This document shows, piece by piece, positions 54,580 to 64,000 of a stretch of 64,000 nucleotides of DNA. The notes below the pieces were generated by a model. It was not told the origin of the DNA and ran no database searches. It saw only the letters and a program-made list of their open reading frames with translations. Position 1 is the stretch's first letter; the number at the start of each line of letters is the position of its first letter. Made by a program: the position numbers and the translations under genes. The stretch is from Convolutriloba macropyga (lineage: Eukaryota), in NCBI RefSeq assembly GCF_964194025.1, contig NC_134472.1, forward strand, positions 9,920,001 through 9,984,000. Direction: 5' to 3'.

Positions 54580-54657
54580 GTCCAGATTGTGAACAGTGCT
54601 TTGGAAGTTATAATATTGCATCGCATAATTTGCATTAAAACTAATATTCGAACAGAT

Positions 54658-54987
54658 ATGAGGCTTGAAACTTGGGTTATCGGCGTCATCGCTGTTTTCA
54701 TAAATGAGTGCGATGCACAAGCGATGATGGAGGAGTTAACTGAGCCTGAGGCATTTATGCTGGAGTTGGAAAGATGCGAGGCGCAATTCCAAGAGAGCCC
54801 TGATTTCCATTCAAGATTTCTTGGTTTCTCGAGACCAGTCGAAATGAAAAAAGTTGTGGAACGTTTCAACGCTGGCAAAGAAATTTACAAGGTTTTTCCG
54901 CTGGTGGGAACAAGAATACGGATCGAACTTGTGAGCATTAAGCAGGAGGGATTTGGAGACAATAAAAATTTTACTTATCTCTACCAA
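54658..54987 (+). CDS. Secreted stefin/cystatin-fold-like protein 6 (G6), exon 1 only (110 aa); closest to G5
   Basis: Signal peptide present. GFSRPVEMKKVVERFNAGKEIYKVFPLVG is nearly identical to G5. Donor CAA|GTATGT at 54988. No second exon is visible because the contig breaks at 55146. Confidence 0.85.
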
Positions 54988-55145
54988 GTATGTTTTTTAT
55001 TAAATGATAAAATTTTTTGACAAACTCTGCGAACTTTCAAATATTTGTGTCATTTAAAAAAAAATTAACGATCAAACTTCATGAAAGAGGTTCTGCTTGT
55101 TAAGAAATGTAGCGGATGGGATTTTTGATTGCAGATATTATTGAC

Positions 55146-55345
55146 NNNNNNNNNNNNNNNNNNNNNNNNNNNNNNNNNNNNNNNNNNNNNNNNNNNNNNN
55201 NNNNNNNNNNNNNNNNNNNNNNNNNNNNNNNNNNNNNNNNNNNNNNNNNNNNNNNNNNNNNNNNNNNNNNNNNNNNNNNNNNNNNNNNNNNNNNNNNNNN
55301 NNNNNNNNNNNNNNNNNNNNNNNNNNNNNNNNNNNNNNNNNNNNN
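55146..55345. other. Assembly gap (200 N)
   Basis: Run of exactly 200 N. Confidence 0.99.
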
Positions 55346-55364
55346 ATTGGGTATTTGTTTTTAG

Positions 55365-55876
55365 ACCTCAGAGATTGGGAAACTCGGAGTGCTCCTGCCG
55401 ACGCCCCAAAACTTTCTCGAAAGGTGATAAACCTCTGTTGCCCATTCCACATGGCCCTGGGAAAGGGTATGATTTGGCTTTGGTGGAGGGCGACAGCCCA
55501 AACCATTGGACGCAATGCTTCGAAAAAGCTGTGGACGCGAGAAGAGTTGAAACAACACATGCTGTCGCCCAAGATGAAGAATAAGGCGGGGTCCGAGCCA
55601 CGGACGGACTTTTCACCTATAAGAAAAAATCTTTTCAAAGGTTTTTATTTGTTTGATGTTCTCGTTTTTTTTCTTGTAGATGCTTGAACTGCCGTTTTGA
55701 AACTTATGATTGAAAGGTTATCTTTAATAGATGGATAGGTATTCCATAAAACCTATAGGAAAAGCGAAATACTTTACAGTGCGATGGTTTTTTTAATGTG
55801 TTTTAGAGCTATTCCAGTTGAAGTTCGAGAGCAAATGGATCGCGCCGTACGAGCTGGCAAAAGTAAGCCTAAATAA
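55365..55876 (+). pseudogene. Frameshifted BEN-domain-like gene fragment
   Basis: Acceptor TTTTTAG at 55364. Joining two frames gives GYDLALVEGDSP/TIGRNASKKLWTREELKQHMLSPK...PRTDFSPIRKNLFK, which resembles the BEN consensus (LFTxEEL...LDP). A very short intron-like segment lies at 55641-55679 and the downstream part has stops. Confidence 0.55.
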
Positions 55877-56205
55877 TATGGGCAACGAAATCCGTTCTCA
55901 AGAGCGGAGAAGCAATGAAGCTCGATCGAGCAATGACGAAAGTGAGAATGTTGATACACAAGCGGAAAACCTAGCTGAATAATAACTTTTGTCTCCAAAC
56001 TGACTCAACCGTTAATGTCTTTCAGTATTATCTGAACTTTTGTTATGTTCATATTTACTCAGTTCTTCATTTATGTTATAAGAACGCGGATGTTTGTTCC
56101 CTTTCACATTTTTTTGTCATAATTTGCTTCATTGTTGTACCGTTGATAATTCATCAATTGAACTTCCTGTTCATCAATCCCTCAAGAACTAAGATTCTTA
56201 TGTGA

Positions 56206-59200
56206 TTAGACATCAGGCTTTGGTCTCCAAATTGAGATTTTGTAGTTAGACATCAGTCTGCTCAAATGGTCAGTCAAGTTGCTGGATTTGGCTGGCATTT
56301 TTTAATTTTTGAAAAGGAACAAATGATCAAGTTGCTGGACTTGGTCTCCAAATTGAGATTTTGTAGTTAGACATCAGTCTGCTCAAATGGTCAGTCAAGT
56401 TGCTGGACTTGGCTGGCATTTTTATTTTTTAAAATGCAACAAATGATCAAGTTGCTGGACTTGGTCTCCAAATTGAGATTTTGTAGTTAGATATCAGTGT
56501 GCTCAAATGGTCAGTCAAGTTGCTGGACTTGGCTGGCATTTTTTAATTTTTGAAAAGGAACAAATGATCAAGTTGCTGGACTTGGTCTCCAAATTGAGTT
56601 TTTGTAGTTAGACATCAGTCTGCTTAAATGGTCAGTCAAGTTGCTGGACTTGGCTGGCATTTTTAAATTTTTGAAAAGGAACAAATGATCAAGTTGCTGG
56701 ACTTGGTCTCCAAATTGAGATTTTGTAGTTAGACATCAGTCTGCTCAAATAGTCAGTCAAGTTGCTGGACTTGGCTGGCATTTTTTTTAAAATGCAACAA
56801 ATGATCAAGTTGCTGGACTTGGTCTCCATATTGAAATGTTGTAGTTAGACATCAGTCTGCTCAAATGGTCAGTCAAGTTGCTGGACTTGGCTGGCATTTT
56901 TATTTTTTAAAATGCAACAAATGATCAAGTTGCTGGACTTGGTCTCCATATTGAAATGTTGAAGTTAGATATCAGTGTGCTCAAATGGTCAGTCAAGTTG
57001 CTGGACTTGGCTGGCATTTTTAATTTTTAAAATGCAACAAATGATCAAGTTGCTGGACTTGGTCTCCAAATTGCGATTTTGTAGTTAGACATCAGTCTGC
57101 TCAAATGGTCAGTCAAGTTGCTGGACTTGGCTGGCATTTTTTAATTTTTGAAAAGGAACAAATGATCAAGTTGCTGGACTTGGTCTCCAAATTGAGATTT
57201 TGTAGTTAGACATCAGTCTGCTCAAATGGTCAGTCAAGTTGCTGGACTTGGCTGGCATTTTTATTTTTTAAAATGCAACAAATGATCAAGTTGCTGGACT
57301 TGGTCTCCATATTGAAATGTTGAAGTTAGATATCAGTGTGCTCAAATGGTCAGTCAAGTTGCTGGACTTGGCTGGCATTTTTAATTTTTAAAATGCAACA
57401 AATTGTCAAGTTGCTGGACTTGGTCTCCAAATTGAGATTTTGTAGTTAGACATCAGTCTGCTCAAATGGTCAGTCAAGTTGCTGGACTTGGCTGGCATTT
57501 TTTAATTTTTGAAAAGGAACAAATGATCAAGTTGCTGGACTTGGTCTCCAAATTGAGATTTTGTAGTTAGACATCAGTCTGCTCAAATGGTCAGTCAAGT
57601 TGCTGGACTTGGCTGCCTTTTTTTAATTTTTGAAAAGGAACAAATGATCAAGTTGCTGGACTTGGTCTCCAAATTGAGATTTTGTAGTTAGACATCAGTC
57701 TGCTCAAATGGTCAGTCAAGTTGCTGGACTTGGCTGGCGTTTTTATTTTTTAAAATGCAACAAATGATCAAGTTGCTGGACTTGGTCTCCATATTGAAAT
57801 GTTGTAGTTAGATATCAGTGTGCTCAAATGGTCAGTCAAGTTGCTGGACTTGGCTGGCATTTTTTATTTTTTGAAAAGGAACAAATGATCAAGTTGCTGG
57901 ACTTGGTCTCCAAATTGAGATTTTGTAGTTAGACATCAGTCTGCTCAAATGGTCAGTCAAGTTGCTGTAATTGGCTGGCATTTTTAAATTGTCTGAAAAG
58001 GAACAAATGATCAAGTTGCTGGACTTGGTCTCCAAATTGAGATTTTGTAGTTAGATATCAGTGTGCTCAAATAGTCAGTCAAATTGCTGGACTTGGCTGG
58101 CATTTTTATTTTTTAAAATGCAACAAATGATCAAGTTGCTGGACTTGGTCTCCATATTGAAATGTTGAAGTTAGATATCAGTGTGCTCAAATGATCAGTC
58201 AAGTTGCTGGACTTGGCTGGCATTTTTAATTTTTAAAATGCAACAAATGATCAAGTTGCTGGACTTGGTCTCCAAATTGAAATGTTGTAGTTAGACATCA
58301 GTCTGCTCAAATGGTCAGTCAAGTTGCTGGACTTGGCTGGCATTTTTATTTTTTAAAATGCAACAAATGATCAAGTTGCTGGACTTGGTCTCCATATTGA
58401 AATGTTGAAGTTAGATATCAGTGTGCTCAAATGGTCAGTCAAGTTGCTGGACTTGGCTGGCATTTTTAATTTTTAAAATGCAACAAATGATCAAGTTGCT
58501 GGACTTGGTCTCCAAATTGAGATTTTGTAGTTAGACATCAGTCTGCTCAAATGGTCAGTCAAGTTGCTGGACTTGGCTGGCATTTTTTAATTTTTGAAAA
58601 GGAACAAATGATCAAGTTGCTGGACTTGGTCTCCAAATTGAGATTTTGTAGTTAGACATCAGTCTGCTCAAATGGTCAGTCAAGTTGCTGGACTTGGCTG
58701 GCATTTTTATTTTTTAAAATGCAACAAATGATCAAGTTGCTGGACTTGGTCTCCATATTGAAATGTTGAAGTTAGATATCAGTGTGCTCAAATGGTCAGT
58801 CAAGTTGCTGGACTTGGCTGGCATTTTTAATTTTTAAAATGCAACAAATGATCAAGTTGCTGGACTTGGTCTCCATATTGAAATGTTGAAGTTAGATATC
58901 AGTGTGCTCAAATGGTCAGTCAAGTTGCTGGACTTGGCTGGCATTTTTAATTTTTAAAATGCAACAAATGATCAAGTTGCTGGACTTGGTCTCCATATTG
59001 AAATGTTGTAGTTAGACATCAGTCTGCTCAAATGGTCAGTCAAGTTGCTGGACTTGGCTGGCATTTTTATTTTTTAAAATGCAACAAATGATCAAGTTGC
59101 TGGACTTGGTCTCCATATTGAAATGTTGAAGTTAGATATCAGTGTGCTCAAATGGTCAGTCAAGTTGCTGGACTTGGCTGGCATTTTTAATTTTTAAAAT

Positions 59201-62200
59201 GCAACAAATGATCTAGTTGCTGGACTTGGTCTCCAAATTGAGATTTTGTAGTTAGACATCAGTCTGCTCAAATGGTCAGTCAAGTTGCTGGACTTGGCTG
59301 GCTTTTTTTAATTTTTGAAAAGGAACAAATGATCAAGTTGCTGGACTTGGTCTCCAAATTGAGATTTTGTAGTTAGACATCAGTCTGCTCAAATGGTCAG
59401 TCAAGTTGCTGGACTTGGCTGGCATTTTTATTTTTTAAAATGCAACAAATGATCAAGTTGCTGGACTTGGTCTCCATATTGAAATGTTGAAGTTAGATAT
59501 CAGTGTGCTCAAATGGTCAGTCAAGTTGCTGGACTTGGCTGGCATTTTTTAATTTTTGAAAAGGAACAAATGATCAAGTTGCTGGACTTGGTCTCCAAAT
59601 TGAGATTTTGTAGTTAGACATCAGTCTGCTCAAATGGTCAGTCAAGTTGCTGGACTTGGCTGCCTTTTTTTAATTTTTGAAAAGGAACAAATGATCAAGT
59701 TGCTGGACTTGGTCTCCAAATTGAGATTTTGTAGTTAGACATCAGTCTGCTCAAATGGTCAGTCAAGTTGCTGGACTTGGCTGGCATTTTTATTTTTTAA
59801 AATGCAACAAATGATCAAGTTGCTGGACTTGGTCTCCATATTGAAATGTTGTAGTTAGATATCAGTGTGCTCAAATGGTCAGTCAAGTTGCTGGACTTGG
59901 CTGGCATTTTTTATTTTTTGAAAAGGAACAAATGATCAAGTTGCTGGACTTGGTCTCCAAATTGAGATTTTGTAGTTAGACATCAGTCTGCTCAAATGGT
60001 CAGTCAAGTTGCTGTAATTGGCTGGCATTTTTAAATTGTCTGAAAAGGAACAAATGATCAAGTTGCTGGACTTGGTCTCCAAATTGAGATTTTGTAGTTA
60101 GATATCAGTGTGCTCAAATAGTCAGTCAAATTGCTGGACTTGGGTGGCATTTTTTTTAAAATGCAACAAATGATCAAGTTGCTGGACTTGGTCTCCATAT
60201 TGAAATGTTGTAGTTAGACATCAGTCTGCTCAAATGGTCAGTCAAGTTGCTGGACTTGGCTGGCATTTTTATTTTTTAAAATGCAACAAATGATCAAGTT
60301 GCTGGACTTGGTCTCCATATTGAAATGTTGAAGTTAGATATCAGTGTGCTCAAATGGTCAGTCAAGTTGCTGGACTTGGCTGGCATTTTTAATTTTTAAA
60401 ATGCAACAAATGATCAAGTTGCTGGACTTGGTCTCCAAATTGAGATTTTGTAGTTAGACATCAGTCTGCTCAAATGGTCAGTCAAGTTGCTGGACTTGGC
60501 TGGCATTTTTTAATTTTTGAAAAGGAACAAATGATCAAGTTGCTGGACTTGGTCTCCAAATTGAGATTTTGTAGTTAGACATCAGTCTGCTCAAATGGTC
60601 AGTCAAGTTGCTGGACCTGGCTGGCATTTTTATTTTTTAAAATGCAACAAATGATCAAGTTGCTGGACTTGGTCTCCATATTGAAATGTTGAAGTTAGAT
60701 ATCAGTGTGCTCAAATGGTCAGTCAAGTTGCTGGACTTGGCTGGAATTTTTAATTTTTAAAATGCAACAAATGATCAAGTTGCTGGACTTGGTCTCCAAA
60801 TTGAGATTTTGTAGTTAGACATCAGTCTGCTCAAATGGTCAGTCAAGTTGCTGGACTTGGCTGGCATTTTTTAATTTTTGAAAAGGAACAAATGATCAAG
60901 TTGCTGGACTTGGTCTCCAAATTGAGATTTTCTAGTTAGACATCAGTCTGCTCAAATGGTCAGTCAAGTTGCTGGACTTGGCTGCCTTTTTTTAAATTTT
61001 TGAAAAGGAACAAATGATCAAGTTGCTGGACTTGGTCTCCAAATTGAGATTTTGTAGTTAGACATCAGTCTGCTCAAATGATCAGTCAAGTTGCTGGACT
61101 TGGCTGGCATTTTTATTTTTTAAAATGCAACAAATGATCAAGTTGCTGGACTTGGTCTCCATATTGAAATGTTGTAGTTAGATATCAGTGTGCTCAAATG
61201 GTCAGTCAAGTTGCTGGACTTGGCTGGCATTTTTTAATTTTTGAAAAGGAACAAATGATCAAGTTGCTGGACTTGGTCTCCAAAATGAGATTTTGTAGTT
61301 AGACATCAGTCTGCTCAAATGGTCAGTCAAGTTGCTGTAATTGGCTGGCAGTTTTAAATTTTCTGAAAAGGAACAAATGATCAAGTTGCTGGACTTGGTC
61401 TCCAAATTGAGATTTTGTAGTTAGATATCAGTGTGCTCAAATGGTCAGTCAAGTTGCTGGACTTGGCTGGCATTTTTTAATTTTTGAAAAGGAACAAATG
61501 ATCAAGTTGCTGGACTTGGTCTCCAAATTGAGTTTTTGTAGTTAGACATCAGTCTGCTCAAATGGTCAGTCAAGTTGCTGGACTTGGCTGGCATTTTTTT
61601 TTAAAATGCAACAAATGATCAAGTTGCTGGACTTCGTCTCCATATTGAAATGTTGTAGTTAGATATCAGTGTGCTCAAATGGTCAGTCAAGTTGCTGGAC
61701 TTGGCTGGCATTTTTTAATTTTTGGAAAGGAACAAATGATCAAGTTGCTGGACTTGGTCTCCAAATTGAGATTCTGTAGTTAGACTTCAGTCTGCTCAAA
61801 TGGTCAGTCAAGTTGCTGGACTTGGCTGGCATTTTTTAATTTTTGAAAAGGAACAAATGATCAAGTTGCTGGACTTGGTCTCCAAATTGAGATTTTGTAG
61901 TTAGACATCAGTCTGCTCAAATGGTCAGTCAAGTTGCTGAACTTGGCTGCCTTTTTTTAATTTTTGAAAAGCAACAAATGATCAAGTTGCTGGACTTGGT
62001 CTCCATATTGAAATGTTGTAGTTAGATATCAGTGTGCTCAAATGGTCAGTCAAGTTGCTGGACTTGGCTGGCATTTTTTGATTTTTGAAAAGGAACAAAT
62101 GATCAAGTTGCTGGACTTGGTCTCCATATTGAGATGTTGTAGTTAGATATCAGTGTGCTCAAATGGTCAGTCAAGTTGATGGACTTGGCTGGCATTTTTT

Positions 62201-62803
62201 AATTTTTGAAAAGGAACAAATGATCAAGTTGCTGGACTTGGTCTCCAAATTGAGATTTTGTAGTTAGACATCAGTCTGCTCAAATGGTCAGTCAAGTTGC
62301 TGGAATTGGCTGGCTTTTTTATTTTTTGAAATGCAACAAATGATCAAGTTGCTGGACTTGGCTGGCTTTTTTATTTTTTAAAATGCAACAAATGATCTGG
62401 TTGCTGGACTTGGTCTCCATATTGAAATGTTGTAGTTAGATATCAGTGTGCTCAAATGGTCAATCAAGTTGCTGGACTTGGCTGGCATTTTTTAATTTTT
62501 TAAAATGCAACAAATGATCAAGTTGTTGGACTTGGTCTCCATATTGAAATGTTGTAGCTAGATATCAGTGTGCTCAAATGGTCAGTCAAGTTGCTGGACT
62601 TGGCTGGCATTTTTTAGTTTTTGAAAAGGAACAAATGATCAAGTTGCTGGACTTGGTCTCCCAATTGAGATTTTGTAGTTAGACATCAGTGTGCTCAAAT
62701 GGTCAGTCAAGATGCTGGACTTGGCCGGCATTTTTTGTTAATTAAAAGGAGCAAATGATCAGTTGCTGGACTTGGTCTTCAAATTGAGATTTTGTAGTTA
62801 GAC
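56206..62803. repeat. 120/121-bp satellite, ~55 copies
   Basis: Unit TTGGTCTCCAAATTGAGATTTTGTAGTTAGACATCAGTCTGCTCAAATGGTCAGTCAAGTTGCTGGACTTGGCTGGCATTTTT...AACAAATGATCAAGTTGCTGGAC, with the 18-mer TCAAGTTGCTGGACTTGG twice per unit. Confidence 0.99.
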
Positions 62804-62842
62804 GTGATTGTGTTCAAATAATAAGTCAGTTTTTGATTTCAG

Positions 62843-64000
62843 ATCAAATGCTACATAAGGATATAGACTGGTCCATATTGGCCCAGTGCGATTATTTCGC
62901 CGTTGAAAAATACGTTCAGACCGCCGAGCGTCCAGCAATGAGAACGGTTAAACCCATGCTTGAAACAATTTACAAGAAAAAGTTGGAAACCAATGAGAAT
63001 TGGCGCAATGCATACGAAACTGTCTGCGCGGCCTATAGAAACTTGAATCCACTTTTTTCGATTTGTTATGACAACTATGGTGGGTACCGGCTACTGTATA
63101 CGGGAAAATCGGCTGTGAGTGCTCAAACAGTGTTTAAAAGGAACCCATTGGGTTTCGTAAGAGAAGTTCCTGAAGGAGTTGTCACTGATCTTTCTATCAT
63201 GTCGTCTGAGCGAACTTAGGTCCGGTACGATTCGTGAATTCGGATTGTAACCCCAATGCAGAATACGATTTCTCCAGCGAGGATGGGATAATACAAATTC
63301 GCGTTAAGAGGCGCATTAAACCAGGCGACGAAATTTTCGTCAAGTACGGTCCTCATTTTTTTGAGTTTAATGCATGCCTTTGCAGAACTTGTGAGGTCAA
63401 AGCAAAGAAAGAGTTTCAAGAGAACAATTTCATATTTGACGTTCTTCTCTCGGATTTGCTGGTAGAGCTGACGGAGCAAACAATTGACGAATCAAAACAA
63501 TCAACTGTTAGGAAACGAAAACTTAAATGTGAGAATAATGGACCAAACGCCAGACGCATTAAAGGCAAAGAGTTAGTCGAGCTCTTCAATAATTTAGAAG
63601 AAAGTCCTTCAAGTGCTACTGAATCACTCGATGACCCTCTAAACTGCTCGATAGACCTGTTTGAAAGCCCGACAAACAGGCGTGTCGATTTCCCTGTCGT
63701 TACTCCAAACACTCCAGAATGCAGTGAAACGGTGTCTAATAGTTCGCATGAAGATCCTGACCCCCTTGAAATTGATTTGTCGACTGAAAGTTCTGAAATA
63801 GGAAATGGTGGTGCTGTGCCTATTAGAGGAAGAGCGTCGTCACCAATTTCATCGAACGCTCTCCTCAGTTTTTCAATTTCGGCTATCGACGAAACGCTAT
63901 CTAATAGTGACGATGATAACTTTGACGCGATCAGTCAGTTGGATGAGACTCTGTTTGATGGAAGCAACGTAAAAACGCAAGAAGCTTCAAATCTTACGGA
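62843..64000 (+). pseudogene. SUV4-20 (KMT5B/C)-like SET/post-SET domain gene with a frameshift at ~63216; second frame open to the window end
   Basis: Acceptor TTTCAG at 62842 and ATG at 62848. Frame 1 ends DLSIMSSERT*. The frame from 63216 reads LGPVRFVNSDCNPNAEYDFSSEDGIIQIRVKRRIKPGDEIFVKYGPHFFEFNACLCRTCE. This parallels the SUV4-20 pattern DFSVMYSTRK...LGPAAFINHDCRPN...IEPGEEISCYYG..FF...CECYTCE (recalled from memory). A Ser/Asp/Glu-rich linker follows with no stop to 64000. Confidence 0.82.

Follow-up and report, generated by a model that had tools for sequence, protein, structure and literature searches.

Does a satellite array that lies between two co-oriented genes, one of which encodes a Suv4-20-like SET domain, belong to ordinary heterochromatin, or is it one part of a mobile element? 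This question is raised by the last part of a 64,000-nucleotide stretch of the genome of the acoel Convolutriloba macropyga (C5:9920001-9984000, contig NC_134472.1, in an assembly of 1.18 Gb), which is called the window throughout. The original prediction, made from the letters of this stretch, described the block as a candidate chromatin-modifying transposon with a BEN-like gene, a 120-bp satellite and a SET domain that could be fused to a transposase. Our analysis leads to a closely related reading: with a probability of about 0.9, positions 55346-64000 are the left and middle parts of a dead cut-and-paste transposon of 26-30 kb, which belongs to the CMC (CACTA-Mirage-Chapaev) superfamily and is nearest to its Mirage group. 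This reading is carried by the SET-transposase fusion itself, the transposase motifs, the termini, the multi-copy state, the selection on both domains, a conserved motif in the arrays and a conserved splice acceptor, all of which were demonstrated.

At the heart of this reading is the frame that is still open at position 64000. Beyond the post-SET motif CLCRTC it crosses an acidic, serine-rich linker and reaches ETLFDGSNVKTQEASNLT at the window edge, as first described, and when it is translated beyond that edge, where a DDE transposase had been suspected, the same frame runs into one (Pfam DUF1258, 3e-12) and extends to coordinate ~65962. It comprises 750 amino acids (aa) altogether, in which Pfam recognizes the end of a SET domain, DUF1258 and a weak Transposase_21. 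The DUF1258 score (43.7-47 bits) lies above the curated cut-off of 33.1, the Transposase_21 match lies below its own cut-off, and DUF1280, the Chapaev domain, has no Pfam match in the transposase part. DUF1258 is the domain of Mirage group transposases, a close relative of the CACTA family (PMC3985635). A copy on chromosome 3 carries an unbroken frame of 1049 aa (L038:2006-5152) with SET, DUF1258 and Transposase_21 matches; there the proposed fusion is encoded as a single intact protein.

A database search returned 59 relatives, many of them 1040-1080 aa long, with both domains present and 43-57% identity; one relative, XP_075264000.1, is from C. macropyga itself. In an alignment of 19 family proteins (28-58% identity), the DDE residues D515, D600 and E851 are invariant, as are C619/C622 and H827/H831, the C(2)C and H(3)H marks of the CMC/Mirage group (PMC12730594). 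The invariant residues of the SET domain in the same alignment are G136, R139, N142, C145, Y178, C188 and C190. The peptide at the window edge, which had been likened weakly to the start of a transposase, does open a transposase motif conserved throughout the family, with L380 and G383 nearly invariant. A first look at the organism's own genome yielded 3223 candidates for the transposase part. Of these, 68 were scored, and every one is a strong match (53-100% identity), most of them with an open frame between 1036 and 1116 aa in length. SET-DUF1258 fusions of ~1000 aa, at 27-33% identity, also occur in other data sets (L043, from Logan ERR12380052, as well as P0164, P0172, P0174 and P0223), which indicates that the architecture is not restricted to this genome. 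Searches of the published literature, Repbase apart, turned up no animal element in which a SET domain is fused to a Mirage or EnSpm transposase.

The unit that carries the fusion is repeated in the genome and has defined ends. The SET segment of the window has five further copies at 86-93% identity over its full length and at least 35 more at 64-68% over the SET part, and it is always accompanied by an array and the upstream gene, which agrees with the multi-copy state and the co-occurrence that had been anticipated. A single-copy host Suv4-20 gene was ruled out by the same genome search, in which the SET segment is multi-copy. Close copies on chromosomes 1, 3, 5 and 8 and on an unplaced contig were compared over 40-50 kb each, with the arrays masked. 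The six copies (86-95%) have an identical order of parts, common ends of homology and unrelated flanks, and the full copies measure 26.6, 26.2 and 29.7 kb. Terminal inverted repeats, one of the hallmarks originally sought, bound the unit: the left end is (TA)CCCGGACCCGAGTGTCA and the right end, as reverse complement, is (TA)CCCGGATCTGAGTGTCA, with 17 of 19 bases matching and the same ends in three copies (5') and five copies (3'). An additional subterminal inverted repeat is ~155 bp long. In an empty-site comparison, the sequences on either side of the chromosome-3 copy were found to come from different repeats. A target-site duplication of 2 bp, as in Mirage, is tentatively considered likely.

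Throughout the family the parts follow one another in the order of 5' inverted repeat and 5' region, three-exon open reading frame 1 (ORF1), array of 120-291-bp units, intronless 1049-aa fusion frame, 178-bp array, small SGNH-looking gene and 3' inverted repeat. The right end of the window's copy lies at coordinate ~72540. In its 3' region, beyond the window edge at coordinates 71149-71565 (L016:9149-9565), a conserved open frame has the motif IVGDNDV, and VIGDSN occurs in another copy; it resembles SGNH hydrolases on visual inspection, and Pfam finds no domain in it. Within the window the following features can be read:

55146-55345, no strand: assembly gap of 200 N, which conceals or replaces the 5' part of the window's copy.
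55365-55640, + strand: ORF1 exon 2, with acceptor tttttag before ACC and donor gt after AAAG (phase 1); frameshifted in the window's copy.
55807-55982, + strand: ORF1 exon 3, with acceptor ttttag before AG (phase 1) and the stop codon at 55980-55982; kept in distant subfamilies.
56220-62828, + strand: array of ~55 repeats of a 120-bp unit (higher-order unit of 241 bp), each with two TCAAGTTGCTGGACTTGG motifs in gene orientation.
62841-62842, + strand: splice-acceptor AG behind a pyrimidine tract, 5 nt 5' of the ATG at 62848.
62848-63420, + strand: Suv4-20-like SET domain (N-terminal helical part, SET core and post-SET CxCxxC), broken.
63421-63944, + strand: acidic, serine-rich linker with a basic patch, fast-evolving.
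63945-64000, + strand: start of the transposase moiety, with the conserved motif LFxGS...LT..LFCS.

The array is flanked by the two ORF1 exons and the SET frame, all on the + strand, as the original prediction had it. The block starts immediately 3' of the gap, which leaves the 5' part out of view. Runs of 200 N, equal in length, also occur at unrelated positions in two other loci, so the run in the window is a scaffolding gap; judging by other copies, it would conceal the 5' inverted repeat, the 5' region, a microsatellite and ORF1 exon 1. Upstream of the gap, the locus comparison found no homology to element copies. A 143-aa open frame directly upstream of it (54589-55020) has no Pfam match and is unlike the element copies. 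The window's own copy is dead. Its SET frame meets a TAG stop at 63217-63219 and reopens in another frame at 63219 with GPVRFVNSDCNPN, and it is this reopened frame that leads through CLCRTC and the acidic linker to the window edge. Compared with the intact chromosome-3 frame, it has a 19-nt deletion at ~63215, in the SET domain, and a 1-nt deletion at ~65403, in the transposase, to which the frameshift of ORF1 is added. Other copies bear different lesions.

By sequence and by its modelled fold, the SET domain is Suv4-20-like. Its nearest solved structures in a PDB profile search are SUV420H2 (2.4e-10) and SUV420H1 (8e-9). In a model built on 18 family sequences, with a predicted local distance difference test score (pLDDT) of 87, the best 15 PDB fold matches are all Suv4-20 enzymes, with template modelling (TM) scores of 0.65-0.80 (0.75-0.80 in 12 of the 15), whereas other SET families reach ~0.4. 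The Suv4-20 matches span 175-246 alignment columns (217-246 in 14 of the 15) and include the N-terminal helical part; sequence identity over the fold is ~20%. For the post-SET zinc site, the CxCxxC and the cysteine of an NSDC motif are invariant among the 19 proteins. The domain is under purifying selection, as is the transposase: between more divergent copies, the ratio of nonsynonymous to synonymous substitution rates (dN/dS) lies at 0.16-0.23 in SET and 0.12-0.17 in the transposase, with 0.4-1.0 in the linker; for REF and the second chromosome-5 copy, which form the closest pair, the three values are 0.49, 0.26 and 0.49, respectively. In a small tree, one insect and one fungal Suv4-20-like protein pair with each other (85/76 support), apart from most of the transposon SETs; with its long branches and uncertain root, this tree is read solely as giving no sign of recent capture from the host.

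The genome contains more than 2000 candidate Suv4-20-like segments. Among them is a second multi-copy Suv4-20-like SET family, separate from the SET-transposase frames, whose open frames span 505-570 aa (for example C7:42241622-42242143 and C3:68900767-68901288); it corresponds to the P0202 cluster, with 24 near-identical members. An insect Suv4-20-like SET matches best at C13:18098542-18098991 (36%, in a 234-aa open frame), a segment that could be part of the Suv4-20 gene of the host itself, as one of its exons.

The satellite arrays belong to the element as well. In the window, Tandem Repeats Finder reports 51 copies of the 120-bp unit with 93% matches at 56220-62361, and decaying units continue to ~62819-62828, close to the AG at 62841-62842; the decay of the satellite toward the acceptor of the SET exon was correctly noticed from the start. 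In every close copy the fusion gene is preceded by a 120/126-bp array of 5 to >19 kb and followed by a 178-bp array of 5-11 kb. High-identity 120-bp units are restricted to close copies, and weaker relatives of them adjoin genes of other subfamilies; units ~75% identical to the 178-bp ones lie downstream of such genes too. In the window's own element the second array is of 178/179 bp and lies outside the window, at coordinates 66125-70987 (L016:4125-8987), with 27 copies at 93% and without the 18-bp motif described below. A satellite independent of the element was considered and ruled out from comparisons of units and motifs across subfamilies, in which both the 120-bp and the 178-bp units are tied to family genes.

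New in these arrays is one invariant 18-bp palindromic motif, TCAAGTTGCTGGACTTGG, which every subfamily has in its arrays. The motif has two arms, CAAGT and its reverse complement ACTTG. The window array contains 108-109 matches to it, and none is found in window positions 1-56000 at up to three mismatches. At eight loci of other subfamilies and on two contigs of a second assembly, the arrays before the gene have periods of 130, 157, ~161, 214, 260 and 291 bp and a different unit sequence, yet they always contain TCAAGTTGCTGGACTTGG in gene orientation with unconserved flanks, so that the motif is invariant across eight periods (120, 126, 130, 157, ~161, 214, 260 and 291 bp). In a distant subfamily the array stands after the gene and has 65 copies of TCAAGCTACTGAGCTTG, in which both arms are altered, to CAAGC and GCTTG. 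Such a joint change of both arms is characteristic of hairpins and of sites that a dimeric protein reads, and the 18-bp palindrome is a candidate for either.

Upstream of the array, ORF1 proved to be a real, conserved gene. In intact copies it consists of an exon of ~340 aa followed by the two exons seen in the window. A protein identical to ORF1 exon 1 of this genome is present in an ENA assembly that also contains the exact sequence of XP_075264000.1, the C. macropyga relative mentioned above. Subfamilies with 41-63% ORF1 identity retain all three exons together with the splice sites, exon 2 has 39 invariant residues in an alignment of seven copies and subfamilies, and ORF1 and the fusion gene lie on common contigs in at least seven cases. 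The label "BEN-like" that this gene had first been given gained no support. Pfam BEN (PF10523), searched with single ORF1 exons and E-values as high as 10, gave no match, although an intron would split the domain in such a search; none of the 82 matches of a whole-genome BEN scan lies within an element copy; and a PDB profile search with ORF1 found no BEN chain. The model of exon 2 (pLDDT 54) is too poor for a comparison with BEN, and the BEN lead from the atlas is only 0.80.

A second new feature is a splice acceptor conserved exactly 5 nt before the start codon of the fusion frame in all lineages checked but one. Of the 17 loci in which the start codon was located (~8 lineages), 16 have a YAG at precisely this distance, the exception being L042 with GAG. 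The donor of ORF1 exon 2, the acceptor of exon 3 and the acceptor of the fusion frame are all in phase 1. With this matching phase the array may be an intron, and exon 2 could be joined in frame alternatively to exon 3 or to the fusion exon.

Several observations weigh against a Mirage-like element with a working chromatin enzyme. The termini are CCCGG...CCGGG, with or without an outer TA, and differ from the CA...TG typical of this group (PMC12730594). TA is present at both ends in two of the three full copies, the third having TG/TA and lacking the 5' TA, and a related subfamily ends in CCGGG followed by TG. The canonical cofactor motif NHxC of SET enzymes is NSDC here, with serine in at least 90% of family members, which makes methyltransferase activity uncertain. 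No RNA run was found to contain the gene, whose expression and splicing are predicted, and the binder of the 18-bp motif is putative.

One alternative concerns the role of the SET domain. Instead of writing H4K20 methylation (on lysine 20 of histone H4), the domain could be catalytically dead or retargeted and serve as a histone- or nucleosome-binding module or act on a non-histone substrate. The replacement of the NHxC histidine by serine, nearly invariant across the family, would fit this, as would an identity to Suv4-20 of only ~20% over the fold and the position of the transposon SETs on long branches, apart from an insect and a fungal Suv4-20-like protein. However, no variation is seen in the zinc ligands, the asparagine, the tyrosine of KYG or the GP.RF motif, and SET has a dN/dS as low as that of the transposase, which a working enzyme explains at least equally well; we regard this alternative as possible but somewhat unlikely. 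The arrays, for their part, might be passenger satellites, expanded by replication slippage inside the transposon and without a role. Their length varies from 5 to >19 kb among copies, and the 178-bp array shares no motif with the first array, both of which passengers would explain. But passengers do not readily account for arrays whose period and unit sequence differ by subfamily while the 18-bp core, its orientation and its place beside the gene stay constant, nor for the joint change of both palindrome arms in the distant subfamily, and a purely passive origin is distinctly improbable.

SETMAR (Metnase) is a single domesticated primate host gene that arose from a mariner copy and a SET domain of another class. 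A domesticated gene of this kind, with the satellite merely neighbouring it as ordinary heterochromatin, would have the same domain order and purifying selection on both domains, as found here. It is very improbable and already contradicted by the thousands of candidates and dozens of intact frames in a single genome, by the inverted repeats that bound the unit, by the array and ORF1 that accompany the gene in every copy and subfamily, and by the broken state of the window's own copy.

Among known systems, Mirage/CMC elements share with this family a DUF1258 match above the cut-off, terminal inverted repeats and possibly a 2-bp target duplication; unlike them, the family has an in-frame N-terminal SET domain of Suv4-20 type, a length of 26-30 kb, two internal satellite arrays and CC...GG termini. 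The En/Spm (CACTA) element of maize makes two products, TnpA and TnpD, by alternative splicing and has subterminal TnpA sites. The likeness lies in two gene products, internal arrays of a short motif and possibly, judging by the acceptor and the donor phase, a single alternatively spliced transcript; here, however, the arrays extend over kilobases and lie in the interior of the element instead of near its ends, there is no relationship between the second proteins, and the splicing is predicted. SETMAR likewise has its SET domain N-terminal to the transposase within one protein, whereas the fusion described here serves a multi-copy element as its transposase. SET genes are also carried by HarbingerS and MuDR of Phytophthora, by proto-Helentron and by the giant Plavaka of red algae (PMC12730594, PMC4067079, bioRxiv 10.1101/2025.02.11.637652). 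Plavaka resembles the present family in being large (17-19 kb), of the EnSpm lineage and SET-carrying, but these elements, which live in oomycetes or algae, carry SET as an accessory gene of its own that belongs to a different SET class, and their descriptions mention no motif arrays.

How might the parts of the transposon work together? The transposase would cut at the terminal inverted repeats. The motif array could act as a dense landing pad for a putative DNA binder encoded by the element, either ORF1 or an ORF1-SET-transposase splice form, and would in this respect be comparable to the subterminal TnpA sites of En/Spm. The SET domain, tethered in this way, might methylate nucleosomes on or next to the element (at H4K20, by homology), and such methylation could help to manage the element's chromatin or the repair of its breaks. 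We put forward the whole programme, in which one transcript is spliced to give ORF1 or ORF1-SET-transposase, the product lands on the 18-bp palindromes and SET lays H4K20 methylation over the element or over its excision or insertion sites, as a tentative and rather doubtful proposal. If it is true, the transposon would come equipped with a heterochromatin or repair mark of its own.

Only rarely do transposons carry chromatin enzymes, and the known cases come mostly from oomycetes, fungi and algae, with the enzyme as a separate gene. Here the host is an animal, an acoel, the family is large and apparently recently active, and the Suv4-20-type domain lies within the transposase itself, which makes the family a natural counterpart to SETMAR. 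It offers a direct approach to two questions: can a histone mark be placed by a mobile element on its own chromatin or on that of its target, and can transposons be a source of satellite arrays that then spread as part of them?

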